Part shown: positions 55,086-61,511 of the stretch, in pieces
Numbering within the stretch: position 1 is the first letter of the stretch
How the letters are laid out: each line of letters begins with the position of its first letter
Source of the DNA: Epithemia pelagica
Taxonomy: Eukaryota > Protista > Bacillariophyta
Assembly (NCBI GenBank): GCA_946965045.2
Contig: OX337238.1
Coordinates: 434,001-498,000 of the forward strand
DNA length: 64,000 nt
Direction of reading: 5' to 3'
The notes under the pieces: generated by a model
The model's input: the letters and a program-made list of their open reading frames with translations, nothing else
The model's database searches: none
What the model was told of the DNA's origin: nothing
Translations under genes and position numbers: made by a program

Positions 55086-55296
55086 GGTATAGTCCGTGAG
55101 TCTGCCCTGTGCCATCTCCATAACTAGTTAGGTAGGAGTACTCCCTCCACGCGCACGCGTACAATACACGCACGACTTACTACGCTATCCACGTCATGAC
55201 ACGTCATGACTCGTGTGATTTTATTGCGTCTTATATTTTTTTTTTAAAATAATGATAATATGGTGTCGACCTCAACGAAATTGTCGCATTGGTAAA

Positions 55297-55522
55297 TGTT
55301 GAGACAAGATAGCACGCCCAAGGAAACACAGGACCAAACCGCGACTCCCAAGAGAGTACAGAGGATGACGAACCCAAAGGAAGCCGAATGGCAAGTGGTG
55401 CAACCACGTAAGAGGTGCAGTCATTCCAAACCGGAGGAGGCGCAACTCATTCTTTTTAAAATAGAAGTAAATTGGTTTCCTTTTGTTGCCTGTACAGCAC
55501 GATCGGTTGACTGGTTTCAACA
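55297..55522 (+). repeat. 5' LTR of copia 2 (226 bp)
   Basis: Identical to the 3' LTR except that it lacks 7 bp (CAAAACG) after GGCGCAA. Confidence 0.97.
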
Positions 55523-55570
55523 TATTTTAAAAAGAAAATAACACTGTTGTTCACCTCAAAGCCTGAGTGC

Positions 55571-56230
55571 ATGTCGGATCAAAATCAAAACTCCCTACCT
55601 ACTGACGAAACGCCTGTACTCGTATTAATCCGTGAGTTCGTGCGGTTGAACCTTCAACACGAAGGGCAAGCCAGCCGACTCAACGAAGATCACGAAACCA
55701 GACTCAGAGCTATTGACCGACAGTATTGGGCCGATACAGCAGAACTGGAACAACGATATCGACGAGCACAAGGTGAAGAACACGAACGACATCAAAGGGC
55801 CCTGCAAGAACACTGTAATCAACGAGAAGCCGATCGCGATAGGGCATATCGGATTGCACAAGAGGCAGAAGTAACACAAGCACAGGGCGAAGGGAACCCT
55901 CAAGTTGTGGAACTGGAAGCGGTTGAAGAACCTCAAGTTGTGATCGAAGATCCTCGAAATCTCGAGATAGTGAACGAACCAAGAGCCATACAAGTGCAAG
56001 CCCGAGCCGTTGAGAATCAACAAGGCATTATCTTTCCACCTATTGGAGCACGAGTCCGAGTGGAAACCCCTGTTCGCCTCGCACGTCATCGACATCCTTT
56101 ACACAACGCAACAGGAACAGTGCTTCGACACACTGATACTTACACGTGGATCCAAGTCTGGAACCCTATCACCAGACGCAACGAAGAATTTAAGCGAAAG
56201 CCCGTCAATCTCATCATCCTACAAGAATGA
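55571..56230 (+). CDS. Extra ORF0 inside copia 2, upstream of gag
   Basis: 219-aa ATG ORF between the 5' LTR and gag-pol; helical E/R/Q-rich part, then IGARVRVETP...ATGTVLRHTDTYTWIQV...KRKPVNL; its TGA overlaps the gag ATG (ATGA, 56227-56230). Confidence 0.8.
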   Translation: MSDQNQNSLPTDETPVLVLIREFVRLNLQHEGQASRLNEDHETRLRAIDRQYWADTAELEQRYRRAQGEEHERHQRALQEHCNQREADRDRAYRIAQEAEVTQAQGEGNPQVVELEAVEEPQVVIEDPRNLEIVNEPRAIQVQARAVENQQGIIFPPIGARVRVETPVRLARHRHPLHNATGTVLRHTDTYTWIQVWNPITRRNEEFKRKPVNLIILQE

Positions 56231-59200
56231 GTCAGTCACCAGACAATGTTAATTCCGGTGGTGGCGGTGGCAGAGGAGGACGAGGCAATAACCGTGGTCG
56301 AGGTCGTGGGGGACGTGGAGGTAGAAACAACAATGGCCAGAGCAAGTTTGAAGGGCAGGAACCCTTGTTGAAGGGATGCGTGTTTGATTATACACAAGAC
56401 GCCCAAGCCAAAAAATACATTCGGAACGTGGAACTGCTGATTGGATATATCGGCATCAAGTTCCCGAAGTACAATATGGACTTCCAGCGTGCCGTTGAAA
56501 ATCTATCTTTGCCTACACCTCCTCGTCCACCACGTCCATCCGACACTGCTAGTCCTATTGAAATAAAAGAATGGGAGTTTCAGTACAAAGCAATTGACGA
56601 GAAGCGCGTGGCTACTGAAGGATTCCGCTCATCGCTCTATAGTGTTCTTCTTGGTCAATCAACGGACCTAATGAAGGACAAGCTCAAGGCCCATAGTTCC
56701 TTCCCTTCCATACAAGCTCATCGAGACGGCATCGAGTTGTTGAAGTTGATCAAGGCTACGACATTTACTTTTGATAGCGACAGGGTCTACACTGGAATGG
56801 CGATGGATAAGATCCGTGCCGATTTCTATGGGATGAAACGACACCCCGGACAGTCTGTCCATAGTTTCTATGAGGCATTTCGGGCGAAGGTCAAGGTAAT
56901 CAATGAGGTAGGAATTCTCCTCTTCGATCAGGCATATGTCCAAGAAATCGCCGCAAAGAATGGCCGACCAGGTGCACCGTCTATGGCTGATAACGAGGAA
57001 GCGCAGGACCGCATGATAGCGAATCGATTTATTCGTGCTTGCGGCCAAAAAGACTACGAAGTGCATCTACACAACAACTTCTTGGATGGGCACATCATCT
57101 ACCCATCAAATCTCGCTGATGCCCGTGCAATTATCGATGCACGCATGGGGCGTCGTGAGCTCAACAGCAACAACAACAACAACCAGAATGAATCAAACAG
57201 TGGCTCTCAAGCGCAAGGCTCAGACAATACAGGTCTTGCTTATCCAACTACTGGCGAAACAGCCAACGAGTCACAGCATAGTGATACCAACCGAGGTTCG
57301 AACTCCGCTGATTGTTGTGTATCTGAAAATGCCTCAGACTCACTTTGTCTTTCTATTGCCACGCTTTCACAGACTAACATTCCACCAACATGGGTCCTCC
57401 TGGATAACCAGGCCACCATTCACATCTTTTCCAACACATCATTACTCGTCAGTCCACCGAAGCCTAGCCAAGAAACCATGAGAATCAAGGGGCATGGTGG
57501 AACAATCACCACATCACAAACAGCCCAAGTCCGAGATTATGGAGCCGTATGGTTCTATGAGAGCGGCTGGGTCAACATACTATCATTCCATCAAGTAAAG
57601 CAACAGTACAGCATCTCATACCAAGCCAACAACGATGAATTTCATGTTCGATCCCGCACAGGCGCACTCATTGACATATTCCGCGCAAGTCCCCAAGGTC
57701 TCTATTACTCTGATTGGTCCTCCCGATCTGCCGCAACTGAATTTGGACTGGTCACTACGATAGCTACAAATAAAGCTAAGTACACAGCAAATGACGTCGC
57801 TAGAGCACAAGGAGTTAGATCATTGCAGATTAAAATAGGTCGACCAAGTGACAGAGAATTCAGCTCAATCCTGGACAAGCGGTTGCTACCCAATTGTCCT
57901 TTCACTAGCAAGGATGTCAAATTAGCCGCAAAGATGCTGGGACCCGACATAGGTACCTTGAAAGGCAAGACGGTTCGAAAGCGTCCCATGCAAGTTGATG
58001 CCTCTCTCATGATCGATGTCCCAATCCCAAAGAAATATCACGATGTTGTCCTTTGCATGGACGTACTTCATGTTAACGGGATCCCATTCCTAGCGACGAT
58101 CTCTCGCTTCATCAAGTTCGGGACGATTACCGCATTGAAGGCACTCAATGGACCAACACTTTTCACGGCAATCAAACAAGTAGTATCGATCTATCGTCGT
58201 GGCAACTTGCGCCCTCGAATTCTTCTCGCCGACGGGGCATTTGATAATGAACCCATGAATGAATTTCTCCATGGGATTGGCATGAGCCTGAACCCGACAT
58301 CCCGAGATGAACATGTCGGCGACATCGAACGGTACATTCGTACCATAAAGGAAAGAATGAGGTGTATGTATAATACACTCCCATTCAAACACATGCCAAA
58401 AGTGTTGGTGATTGAAATGGCAAAAGCCGCCGTCTATTGGCTGAATGCCTTCCCAGCTGCCAATGGAATATCGGACGAGCAGAGCCCAAAGACCCTCGTC
58501 ACCGGCCAACAACTGGATTATAACCGTCACTGCAAGTATGAGTTTGGACAATACGTCCAGACCCATGAGCCACACGACAATTCCATGGAGCCAAGAACCC
58601 AAGGAGCACTGGCCCTTCGCCCAACTGGCAACCAACAGGGTGGCCATTATTTCTTAAACTTGTTATCCGGTCGTGTCATCAATCGGAACCATGCCACGAT
58701 TGTTCCTATGCCTGATATTGCCCTCCAGCGAGTGTACCAATTGGCTGTTGCCCAGGAGGCATATCCGAATCTTGCTTTTGGGGATAGGGACAACCGCATC
58801 TTGGCTTTGGAATACGATGATTTTGACGAAGGAAATGATGAAGATTATGAGTATGATGTGGACGACGAGGATGATGTATTGAGGTATGATGAGGATATCG
58901 TCGATAATGAGTTGGCGACGGTGAACGAGGACCCGGTGGAGGAGTTGGTCATGGAAGAAGTGGGAAATGAGAACGATTACGATCTTAATGATCAAGCGAT
59001 AATGGATGGTCCCGAGGTAGGAGAGGATCAGGAGTTGGATGGTCCCGAGGATGGCCCCGAGGATGGAGATAACGTGGGCCTTGGTTTGGATCTTAATGGT
59101 CCAGTGGATGGAGTCGTAGAAGGAGGTGGAAACGATGATGGAGTACAGGAAGGAGTCGACATTGATGCTCATGAGGAACAACTACATGCTGACTATGTGG

Positions 59201-61299
59201 AACAGGCTGTTGCAGATCAAGACCTAATCGAGGCAAATCAAGGAGTGGAGGCAAATCAAGGAGTGGAACCCGTGCCAAATCAAGGAGTGGGCCCACAACC
59301 CGAGCAACCACCCATGCAACAACCCAACATCCATGGTGTTGGCGGTGGAATTGTTGGCGGCGGCGGTGATGCTGTGGCAGCACCCATTCACCCTAGATAT
59401 AATCTACGGACGAATCGAGAACGGAACTATGCCCATCGATACAACAATGACATTTATGTTACTGCCGAAGTGGCGCAAGACGTGTCAACACCCCAAATGG
59501 GGATGAAACAAGGAGTGCGATTGTTTGGTGATGCAGGCGTGGCCGCAGTGAAAAAGGAAGTCCTGCAGTTGCATGACCGGGAAGTAATGCGAGCCATTAT
59601 GAAAAGCTCATTGACCAAACAACAAATCCGACAAGCGCTTGGATACTTGATGTTCTTGAAGAGAAAGAGAACTGGCAAAATTAAAGGACGGGGCTGCGCA
59701 GATGGCCGTAAACAACGCGAATACATAAACAAAGAAGATGCATCTTCTCCCACAGTCGCAACAGAGGCCGTCTTCCTAAGTGCAATCATTGATGCAATGG
59801 AACGAAGGGCCGTGGCAGTAGTGGATATTCCAGGGGCCTTTATGCAGGCCATGATGGACCCTGGGGTGCACATGAGAATCACCGGGCTCATGGTTGAATT
59901 GTTGCTTGAAATTGATGAGAAAATGTACAGACCATTCGTTGTGGTCGAGAAAGGCGAACCCGTCATCTACGTTGAATTGCTTCGTGCCCTGTACGGCACC
60001 CTGCGAGCGGCAAGACTGTTTTGGGAGAAGTTAACTGCCGTCATCAAGGAGTGGGGTTTCATTGTGAACCCATATGACAGTTGTGTGGCTAACAAAACAA
60101 TCAATGGGTCGCAATGCACCATCACATGGCACATTGACGACCTCAAAATATCACACAAGGAAGAAAGCGTGGTCAGCAGTATCATAGAACAAATACAAGC
60201 CACATTCGGTCAACAAGGTGAGCTTTCGATCTCAAGAGGAAAACGCCATGACTATTTGGGCATGTACCTTGATTATAGCGAACCAGGGCAGTTGATTGTT
60301 GACATGAGGACCGCCATACAGAGTATCATCGATGATGTACCAAAGGAGTTCAAAGGGTTGGCACAAACCCCAGCAGCCTCTCATCTTTTCCATCTGCAAG
60401 ATGGAGCCGAGCAGTTGGATAGCGACCAGGCAGACCAGTTTCACAGCTTCACCATGAGGCTGATGTATATTGCCCAACGTGGACGACCTGACATCCGAGC
60501 GGCCGTAGCTTTCCTCAGTACACGAGTGAAAGAACCAACCAAGGATGATTGGCGTAAGTTGTCGCGTGTGATGAAATACCTCCAAACAACACCCGACTTG
60601 CTTCTTCGGTTAAATTGTGATGGGACCGGAATTCTTCGATGGTGGGTGGACGCATCCTATGCCGTCCATCCTAACATGCGTGGGCATACCGGGGGCGTAA
60701 TGATGATGGGAAAAGGAGCTGCGATGAGCATCTCATCAAAACAGAAGTTGGTAGCTCGTAGTTCCACCGAGAGCGAGCTCATCGGTGTCCATGATGCCAT
60801 GCCAAATATGCTTTGGTGTCGGCAATTCCTGATCGCACAAGGTTATCAAGTCAAGGAGATGAAATTATTCCAAGATAACATGAGTGCAATGTTGTTGGAG
60901 AAAAACGGACGAGCCTCCAGCAGCAAACGTACCAAACATATCGACATTCGATATTTCTTCATTAAAGATCGAGTCGATAACAAGGAACTGACAATTGAAC
61001 ATTGTCCCACGGAAGAAATGATCGCCGATTTCCATACGAAACCGCTTCAAGGTAACTTGTTTTACAAGTTCCGTGATCTTATCATGAATATCCCGAGCAC
61101 TGATATCTATCATTCCTCGCGAAGGAGTGTGTTGAGACAAGATAGCACGCCCAAGGAAACACAGGACCAAACCGCGACTCCCAAGAGAGTACAGAGGATG
61201 ACGAACCCAAAGGAAGCCGAATGGCAAGTGGTGCAACCACGTAAGAGGTGCAGTCATTCCAAACCGGAGGAGGCGCAACAAAACGCTCATTCTTTTTAA
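56227..61299 (+). CDS. Gag-Pol polyprotein of copia 2
   Basis: RGG-rich N-terminus; WVLLDNQAT (PR); LCMDVLHVNG, LLADGAF, EHVGDIERYIRTIKER (IN); KGRGCADG, VVDIPGAFMQA, ALYG, WHIDDLK (RT); WVDASYAVH, SSTESE, QDNMSA, ADFHTKPLQG (RH). The ORF ends inside the 3' LTR. Confidence 0.98.
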   Translation: MSQSPDNVNSGGGGGRGGRGNNRGRGRGGRGGRNNNGQSKFEGQEPLLKGCVFDYTQDAQAKKYIRNVELLIGYIGIKFPKYNMDFQRAVENLSLPTPPRPPRPSDTASPIEIKEWEFQYKAIDEKRVATEGFRSSLYSVLLGQSTDLMKDKLKAHSSFPSIQAHRDGIELLKLIKATTFTFDSDRVYTGMAMDKIRADFYGMKRHPGQSVHSFYEAFRAKVKVINEVGILLFDQAYVQEIAAKNGRPGAPSMADNEEAQDRMIANRFIRACGQKDYEVHLHNNFLDGHIIYPSNLADARAIIDARMGRRELNSNNNNNQNESNSGSQAQGSDNTGLAYPTTGETANESQHSDTNRGSNSADCCVSENASDSLCLSIATLSQTNIPPTWVLLDNQATIHIFSNTSLLVSPPKPSQETMRIKGHGGTITTSQTAQVRDYGAVWFYESGWVNILSFHQVKQQYSISYQANNDEFHVRSRTGALIDIFRASPQGLYYSDWSSRSAATEFGLVTTIATNKAKYTANDVARAQGVRSLQIKIGRPSDREFSSILDKRLLPNCPFTSKDVKLAAKMLGPDIGTLKGKTVRKRPMQVDASLMIDVPIPKKYHDVVLCMDVLHVNGIPFLATISRFIKFGTITALKALNGPTLFTAIKQVVSIYRRGNLRPRILLADGAFDNEPMNEFLHGIGMSLNPTSRDEHVGDIERYIRTIKERMRCMYNTLPFKHMPKVLVIEMAKAAVYWLNAFPAANGISDEQSPKTLVTGQQLDYNRHCKYEFGQYVQTHEPHDNSMEPRTQGALALRPTGNQQGGHYFLNLLSGRVINRNHATIVPMPDIALQRVYQLAVAQEAYPNLAFGDRDNRILALEYDDFDEGNDEDYEYDVDDEDDVLRYDEDIVDNELATVNEDPVEELVMEEVGNENDYDLNDQAIMDGPEVGEDQELDGPEDGPEDGDNVGLGLDLNGPVDGVVEGGGNDDGVQEGVDIDAHEEQLHADYVEQAVADQDLIEANQGVEANQGVEPVPNQGVGPQPEQPPMQQPNIHGVGGGIVGGGGDAVAAPIHPRYNLRTNRERNYAHRYNNDIYVTAEVAQDVSTPQMGMKQGVRLFGDAGVAAVKKEVLQLHDREVMRAIMKSSLTKQQIRQALGYLMFLKRKRTGKIKGRGCADGRKQREYINKEDASSPTVATEAVFLSAIIDAMERRAVAVVDIPGAFMQAMMDPGVHMRITGLMVELLLEIDEKMYRPFVVVEKGEPVIYVELLRALYGTLRAARLFWEKLTAVIKEWGFIVNPYDSCVANKTINGSQCTITWHIDDLKISHKEESVVSSIIEQIQATFGQQGELSISRGKRHDYLGMYLDYSEPGQLIVDMRTAIQSIIDDVPKEFKGLAQTPAASHLFHLQDGAEQLDSDQADQFHSFTMRLMYIAQRGRPDIRAAVAFLSTRVKEPTKDDWRKLSRVMKYLQTTPDLLLRLNCDGTGILRWWVDASYAVHPNMRGHTGGVMMMGKGAAMSISSKQKLVARSSTESELIGVHDAMPNMLWCRQFLIAQGYQVKEMKLFQDNMSAMLLEKNGRASSSKRTKHIDIRYFFIKDRVDNKELTIEHCPTEEMIADFHTKPLQGNLFYKFRDLIMNIPSTDIYHSSRRSVLRQDSTPKETQDQTATPKRVQRMTNPKEAEWQVVQPRKRCSHSKPEEAQQNAHSF

Positions 61300-61362
61300 A
61301 ATAGAAGTAAATTGGTTTCCTTTTGTTGCCTGTACAGCACGATCGGTTGACTGGTTTCAACA
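61130..61362 (+). repeat. 3' LTR of copia 2 (233 bp)
   Basis: TG...CA ends; preceded by the short purine run GAAGGAG; followed by TSD GTAAA. Confidence 0.97.
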
Positions 61363-61511
61363 GTAAACTCAACAGAAGAAAGAGAAAGGAGCTTCAATAA
61401 AACGGCAGCAACAAGAAAGAGGAAAGAGGAGACTATCCAGTTGAGAAAGAGAGGAAAAGACATCAAGTGAAGAGGTTGTGTGGAAGAGAGAAGAAGGCTT
61501 TCTCACCGAAT

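Follow-up and report, generated by a model that had tools for sequence, protein, structure and literature searches.

The window analysed here is a stretch of 64,000 nucleotides of Epithemia pelagica DNA (contig OX337238.1, positions 434,001–498,000). Within it lies an LTR retrotransposon that is 6,066 bp long and intact; the genome as a whole (60.5 Mb in 23 contigs) contains six full copies of this element with 95–100% identity. The structural marks of Ty1/copia elements are all present: LTRs with TG...CA ends, a 5-bp target-site duplication and a polypurine tract before the 3' LTR (Table 1). The sequence (A/G)AGGAGTG before the 3' LTR is kept in all families of the element's own genome. Four public runs were found to contain the sequence, all of them as DNA contigs; these support the termini of the LTRs, since they join other flanks exactly at 61130, 61363 and 55522. 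The two LTRs are identical except for AAAACGC (7 bp, 61280–61286), which is extra in the 3' copy. This heptamer is missing from the window 5' LTR just upstream of the TCA motif (55440–55449 compared with 61273–61289) and is present in the 5' LTRs of other copies; the latter align over 411 bases, compared to 404 here, and have their TCA motif 7 bases further in. In copy L004 this place just before the TCA carries another small lesion.

Table 1. Features of the retrotransposon in the window, and arm 1 sequences of the seven families found in the same genome.
Feature	Positions	Strand	Basis or remark
Target-site duplication GTAAA, 5' copy	55292–55296	+	5 bp, repeated at 61363–61367
5' LTR, 226 bp, TGTTG...CAACA	55297–55522	+	Direct repeats, sequence
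Initiator-like TCATTCT	55447–55453	+	Fits YYANWYY and TCAH(+1)W; YTCA common to 7/7 families
Arm 1, predicted self-primer	55450–55463	+	Perfect complement of 55523–55536; covariation
Loop (rest of R plus U5), 59 nt	55464–55522	+	Alignment A1; fold
Arm 2, predicted primer-binding site (PBS), begins at base 1 past the LTR	55523–55536	+	
Extra upstream ORF, 219 aa from ATG	55571–56230	+	No Pfam match
Gag-Pol polyprotein ORF, 1690 aa	56227–61299	+	N-terminus RGG-rich, without CCHC
Integrase catalytic core and C-terminal domain (modelled), aa 590–845	57994–58761	+	AlphaFold model, Foldseek
Reverse transcriptase, Pfam RVT_2, aa 1147–1330	59665–60216	+	38.3 bits, cut-off 31.6
Polypurine tract GAAGGAGTG, adjoins the 3' LTR	61121–61129	+	Sequence
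3' LTR, 233 bp, TGTTG...CAACA	61130–61362	+	Direct repeats, sequence
Arm 1 copy in the 3' LTR	61290–61303	+	Contains the polyprotein stop TAA, 61297–61299
Target-site duplication GTAAA, 3' copy	61363–61367	+	Sequence
Arm 1, families A and C			TTCTTTTTAAAATA
Arm 1, family B			CTCTTTGTAATCTA
Arm 1, family D			TTCTATCAACAATA
Arm 1, family E			TTCTATTGGAAATA
Arm 1, family F			TTCGATGAGTAAAA
Arm 1, family G			TTCTAAGGAGATTA

The Pfam search of the polyprotein identified the reverse transcriptase as RVT_2 and gave no match for integrase (including rve), protease or RNase H; a PDB profile search of the same protein also returned no match. The integrase was recognised at the structural level. An AlphaFold model of aa 590–845, built with 25 homologues (mean pLDDT 85.2), resembles the retroviral integrase core and C-terminal domain (Foldseek E 6e-10, probability 1.00), with matching structures from maedi-visna virus, SIV, RSV, HIV and PFV. 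An integrase N-terminal to the reverse transcriptase gives the Ty1/copia domain order; with a copia-type RVT_2 and the modelled integrase upstream of it, the element is assigned to Ty1/copia, in agreement with the original prediction. Membership in the Tf1/sushi group of Ty3/gypsy is ruled out by the same order (aa 590–845 before aa 1147–1330). All relatives contain PF07727, and the named ones belong to two diatoms, Mayamaea pseudoterrestris and Nitzschia sp.

Gag is the N-terminus of the large ORF at 56227–61299, and the ORF at 55571–56230 is an additional frame upstream of it. The Gag part of the window polyprotein has no C-x2-C-x4-H-x4-C motif, and a CCHC knuckle is found in 10 of the 24 aligned relatives. 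The Gag of Tf1 is likewise without CCHC. An RGG/RG-rich tract occupies the Gag N-terminus of the window copy (56227–56350, polyprotein aa 10–36) and may provide nucleic-acid chaperone activity in copies without the knuckle. An upstream ORF of 166–279 aa between the PBS and the Gag-Pol ORF was observed in all seven own-genome families (loci L026, L029, L034, L037, L040 and L041 and the window). Six families have the stop of this ORF either overlapping the polyprotein ATG, as in the ATGA of the window, or at most 9 nt from it, an adjacency that suggests termination-reinitiation coupling between the two frames; the exception is L026, a broken copy with a gap of about 160 nt. The upstream ORF is missing from more distant relatives such as L050. 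At its other end, the polyprotein ORF runs through the polypurine tract, which encodes an invariant R-S-V-L, and the U3 of the 3' LTR (61130–61299 in the window, and the same region in L026–L041). The tail encoded by U3 is not conserved in sequence between families, and the stop codon falls within the 3' copy of arm 1 or at most 5 nt past it in 7/7 families.

The leader contains an inverted repeat between the 5' LTR and the sequence that follows it. Arm 1 (TTCTTTTTAAAATA) and arm 2 (TATTTTAAAAAGAA) are exact reverse complements over 14/14 bases. Arm 1 comes straight after the TCA of the initiator-like motif, beginning one base after A55449, and arm 2 has no TGG start. Since the LTR limits are exact, arm 2 is placed at the first base past the LTR, and the 3' end of arm 1 (55463) stands opposite this base. 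Both ends of the duplex are fixed, with A opposite A at 55449/55537 and G opposite A at 55464/55522. The complementarity, its position and the missing TGG, as given in the original prediction, are borne out by the sequence. Shuffling the LTR 20,000 times with its dinucleotides preserved gave complements of at most 11 nt anchored at the LTR end, versus the 14 nt observed; about 9,000 mock 20-mers taken from the rest of the window gave a longest complement of 12 nt, found once. The minimum-free-energy structure of the 97-nt leader includes the 14-bp stem (-23.5 kcal/mol, z = -3.65), and none of 200 shuffles does as well. The duplex is present in the minimum-free-energy fold of every leader examined. 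Inner stem-loops form within the loop in each family, and no covarying common inner helix analogous to the Tf1 U5-IR was found across families. Rfam has no family for the leader, the sole match having an E-value of 0.77.

A search of the E. pelagica genome with the reverse transcriptase region revealed more than 100 related elements with 42–100% identity. The set compared in detail comprises 20 loci, 18 of them with both LTRs, which together with the window copy constitute seven families whose reverse transcriptase region is 66–79% identical to that of the window; elements at 58%, 52% and 45% were left outside the set. In all seven families a perfect 14-nt duplex joins the bases directly after YTCA to those directly after CAACA; it is formed by six different arm sequences (Table 1) and encloses a loop of 46–60 nt. 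Single mismatches occur in only two individual copies, L032 and L042. The loop holds a conserved block (GTTGCCTGTACAGCAC-like) and an invariant GTTTCAACA end in alignment A1, which contains 15 sequences.

In this alignment 99.0% of the helix cells are paired, as opposed to 71% in shuffles and 40–51% when the partner is slid by 1–3 columns. Two-sided changes are seen in 11 of the 14 pairs and one-sided changes in none. Covariation in the helix scores 0.688; shuffles give 0.157, with 0/500 reaching the observed value, and sliding the partner by 1–3 columns gives 0.161 at most. RNAalifold recovers the same helix on A1 unprompted. Conserved complementarity with compensatory change in sister elements had been set beforehand as a test of the prediction, which passes it clearly. 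Past arm 2 the sequence differs from family to family, so it cannot conceal a tRNA site common to them all.

The arrangement extends beyond this genome. Twelve relatives were collected on contigs from other assemblies and runs, with 51–61% identity in the reverse transcriptase region, and 11 of them have it, with arms of 13–17 nt that are all different; the arm of L056 has 50% G+C, and that of L057 makes 13 perfect pairs followed by U-G. The exception is L046 from M. pseudoterrestris (GCA_027923505.1), where only the first 7 bases past the LTR are complementary. The copy at this locus (L046:2379-2620) is young: its LTRs are 100% identical and flanked by the 5-bp duplication ACCAG. The distal half of its PBS is replaced. 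Three relatives with the duplex, L048, L055 and L057, encode a CCHC knuckle. Its absence is thus irrelevant to the duplex: the original prediction was right that the window copy lacks a knuckle and mistaken in taking this as a sign of self-priming.

The metagenome scan covered 80 loci on 413 kb of contigs. On the coding strand we found 41 perfect inverted pairs of at least 13 nt with a loop of 27–151 nt, and 40 of them, from 37 loci, have the context of an arm followed at a distance by CAAC(A) and directly by the other arm. Arm 1 is preceded by tca in 22 of these 40 pairs and by cca or ctc in most others. Seven further loci (L059, L060, L078, L102, L106, L122 and L131) were recovered by relaxed and circular-permutation searches, which brings the positive loci to 44/80. 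Most of the other 36 lie on short contigs in which the LTR-leader junction is incomplete, and no clearly evaluable negative was seen among those inspected. The number of distinct arms is 16 in assemblies and 35 in metagenome contigs. Perfect arms are strictly Watson-Crick, and G-U pairs are confined to two diverged environmental copies, L057 and L059. In L047 (1-9184, minus strand) a self-complementary element is inserted in a more canonical copia element with gag_pre-integrs and RVT_2 on the opposite strand; L057 (56-8598), L063, L112 and L092 contain tandem elements that share LTRs (internal-LTR-internal).

The position of arm 1 can be compared with signals for transcription initiation. For diatoms, Kadono et al. 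(2015, PMC4686930) proposed the initiator-like consensus TCAH(+1)W, in which transcription starts one base past TCA. It places the predicted +1 at T55450, so that the arm would be exactly the first 14 nt of the RNA, comparable to the first 11 nt in Tf1. As the arm follows TCA in all seven families, the consensus lends this start indirect support. Under the YYANWYY reading, +1 would be A55449 and the arm would be nucleotides 2-15. The conserved first bases of the arms (TTCT, CTCT) are compatible with both readings, and for this reason the 5' part of the arm is probably under promoter constraint as well. TCAG in L049, L051 and L052 does not fit H(+1), and L050 pairs from the A of the motif.

Two Logan contigs of related elements touch on the extent of R. 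The first base of L054 (SRR29340323) is the one that follows arm 1, and its last base is the final base of arm 1; the end of L053 (SRR22746120) lies 7 nt past arm 1. Either a circular LTR-plus-internal graph was broken at arbitrary points, or these are real molecule ends at the predicted cleavage site or the poly(A) site. Together with the polyprotein stop at the 3' arm, the contig ends could point to an R that is very short and to some function of the arm in the 3' LTR.

Taken together, the conserved geometry, the covariation throughout the clade and the 14-mer census of the genome described below, which revealed no other primer source, support the self-priming of a Ty1/copia element that had originally been proposed. 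We consider it likely, with a probability of roughly 0.8, that this recently active diatom element primes its minus-strand DNA with a piece of its own RNA and not with a tRNA. That it does so by exactly the cis mechanism of Tf1 is a narrower claim, which we favour with less assurance. For the start site, the cleavage and its enzyme, the pairing in cis as opposed to trans and the extent of R, we infer the following scheme. The RNA would start near 55449-55450, where the 5' LTR has its TCA initiator. The first 14 nt or so (55450-55463) would then fold over the 59-nt loop and pair with 55523-55536. A cut past 55463 would free a 3'-OH; by analogy with Tf1, the RNase H of the element could be the cutter. 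Extension would copy A55522, then C55521, and continue through U5 to give a strong-stop DNA of about 59 nt. With the 3'-OH opposite the first base after U5, the terminal CA would be copied first and the LTR end would be defined. During plus-strand synthesis the PBS of the progeny would be re-copied from the primer in each cycle, and the arms would therefore be kept strictly Watson-Crick.

A variant of self-priming retains the self-derived primer and draws it from the copy of the arm in the 3' R, or from a co-packaged second RNA pairing in trans. The same 14 nt are indeed present in the 3' LTR at 61290-61303, and such a primer might need no RNase H cut of the template strand. Tf1-type first strand transfer needs an R that extends past the arm, and a Tf1-type cut would remove a 14-nt R from the template. 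A very short R would fit the polyprotein stop in or at most 5 nt past the 3' arm in seven families, and the contigs L054 and L053 end 0 and 7 nt past arm 1. Against this, the contig ends are possibly arbitrary breaks of a circularised LTR-plus-internal graph, a polyadenylated 3' end could prime only after trimming, and Tf1, the only studied case, uses its 5' end. We regard this variant as unlikely, although it is the strongest of the competing explanations.

Alternatively, the duplex could be a conserved leader structure that serves in packaging, dimerisation, translation control of the upstream ORF or a Ty1-like cyclisation, with another molecule acting as the primer. Covariation indicates that the pairing is selected or templated; it proves pairing only and does not imply priming by itself. 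Inner stem-loops also form in the loop, as they might in such a structure. However, arm 2 starts exactly past the LTR in all families, which is by definition the position opposite the primer 3' end, and there is no alternative conserved site past arm 2. The arms are also perfect, without G-U intermediates, as is predicted for a PBS re-copied from its primer. We consider a role of the duplex apart from priming quite improbable.

By default, Ty1/copia elements are primed by a whole or halved tRNA, as ordinary copia elements and hemiviruses are, and a matching tRNA or tRNA fragment was among the outcomes that the original prediction had named as able to overturn it. The PBS has no TGG start, and it differs between sister families in step with the LTR arm. 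Above all, the PBS exists in more than 50 versions, each matching the LTR of its own element, and these cannot all be tRNA sites. In the genome-wide census, the 14-mer complementary to the window PBS occurs 40 times and the reversed control 0 times; 26 occurrences are TCA-arm contexts, 13 are ACA-PBS contexts and one is the LTR of L004 with its mutated initiator. As every occurrence lies in an LTR or PBS context, a perfectly matched primer from another locus of the 60.5-Mb assembly, and with it a perfect tRNA source, is excluded. No tRNA genes are present in the 64-kb window, and ARAGORN returned nothing on the pooled loci. The census covers full 14-mer matches, and organellar tRNAs are perhaps missing from the assembly; even so, we consider a tRNA primer very improbable. 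Finally, a chance match of A+T-rich sequence, which the original prediction had named as another outcome that could overturn it and which the 13/14 A/T bases of the window arm might suggest, is refuted by the comparative data, as 0/20,000 shuffles match the observed length and the register is constant in all families while the arms differ and some are G+C-rich.

Returning to self-priming, we tentatively extend it to a broader proposal, which we hold at somewhat short of even odds. Self-priming could be ancestral and general in a whole radiation of diatom Ty1/copia elements, and this radiation could be independent of Tf1/sushi and of the plant TAR lineage; R may be very short, and the 3' arm could take part in priming or strand transfer. 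Because the PBS would be re-copied every cycle, primer and PBS would form a fast-drifting, family-specific lock and key, which would account for the strictly Watson-Crick covariation and also for the divergence of arms between families within a single genome. Such elements would be free of host tRNAs, and would go unseen by tRNA-based PBS annotation and by restriction based on tRNA fragments. If the whole clade self-primes, LTR annotation pipelines that require a tRNA PBS miss or mis-filter its members, and its replication is uncoupled from host tRNA pools and from defences directed at a tRNA PBS. A simple identification rule can be given: the 12-17 nt past CAACA pair with a segment that follows TCA and lies 27 to about 200 nt upstream. 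The natural covariation of the clade should also be useful for asking what an RNase H requires for generating its own primer. In diatom genomes, the dominant transposons are copia-like. In marine plankton, reverse transcriptase genes are described as abundant and transcribed (PMC5029228).

Known systems for comparison include the diatom Ty1/copia groups named CoDi. Maumus et al. (2009) described them without treating the PBS or priming (PMC2806351). They are copia-like diatom elements that also include groups with and without a Gag CCHC, the likeness to the present clade being drawn through the hosts Mayamaea and Nitzschia only. In the literature that we searched, which was not exhaustive, no description of self-priming in a diatom element was found. 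The hemivirus type (copia, Ty5, Osser) also has a Ty1/copia PBS without a TGG start, and priming by half tRNA-Met or tRNA-Ile is known for the Osser, Bryco and Bianca lineages (PMC6317226). In contrast to the diatom PBS, which varies and matches its own LTR only, the hemivirus PBS is conserved and matches an internal tRNA segment. Fungal GalEa copia elements have a 'conserved hairpin site' and neither a tRNA PBS nor a complementary segment in U5 or R (PMC5445492). Like the diatom elements, they lack a tRNA PBS and have conserved self-complementarity where the PBS would be. In GalEa, however, it takes the form of a local palindrome, with the last A of the LTR as part of it, whereas the partner of the diatom PBS lies 46-150 nt upstream, at the predicted RNA start.

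Self-priming in the Tf1/sushi group is cited as established (Lin and Levin 1997; Butler et al. 2001; Atwood-Moore et al. 2006; PMC6317226). In both systems the PBS adjoins the 5' LTR, complements the start of the element's own transcript (here the predicted start) and is not a tRNA site; the fold-back encloses U5 and puts the primer 3' end opposite the first base after U5; and CCHC is missing from Gag, in the diatom case from that of the window copy. The differences are equally clear. Tf1/sushi elements are Ty3/gypsy chromoviruses, whereas here the integrase is upstream of RVT_2; the arms of Tf1 are 11 nt, compared to 14 nt here and 12-17 nt in relatives; and many self-complementary relatives of the diatom element have kept CCHC. 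For the plant Ty1/copia TAR lineage (Houba, Osr-1), self-priming was predicted by Neumann et al. (2019), citing Capy (2005) (PMC6317226). Like the diatom elements, TAR belongs to Ty1/copia, has no tRNA PBS and owes its inferred self-priming to sequence; its hosts are green plants and not diatoms, and the two are set side by side by description only. The diatom element is accordingly not the first case of self-priming in copia, and the convergence with Tf1 that had been envisaged is a further case because TAR was predicted earlier. The mechanism itself is not new; the present clade is a new host lineage and a new clade for it, with unusually rich covariation. If it self-primes as a whole, it offers a second or third origin of self-priming, possibly an independent one.
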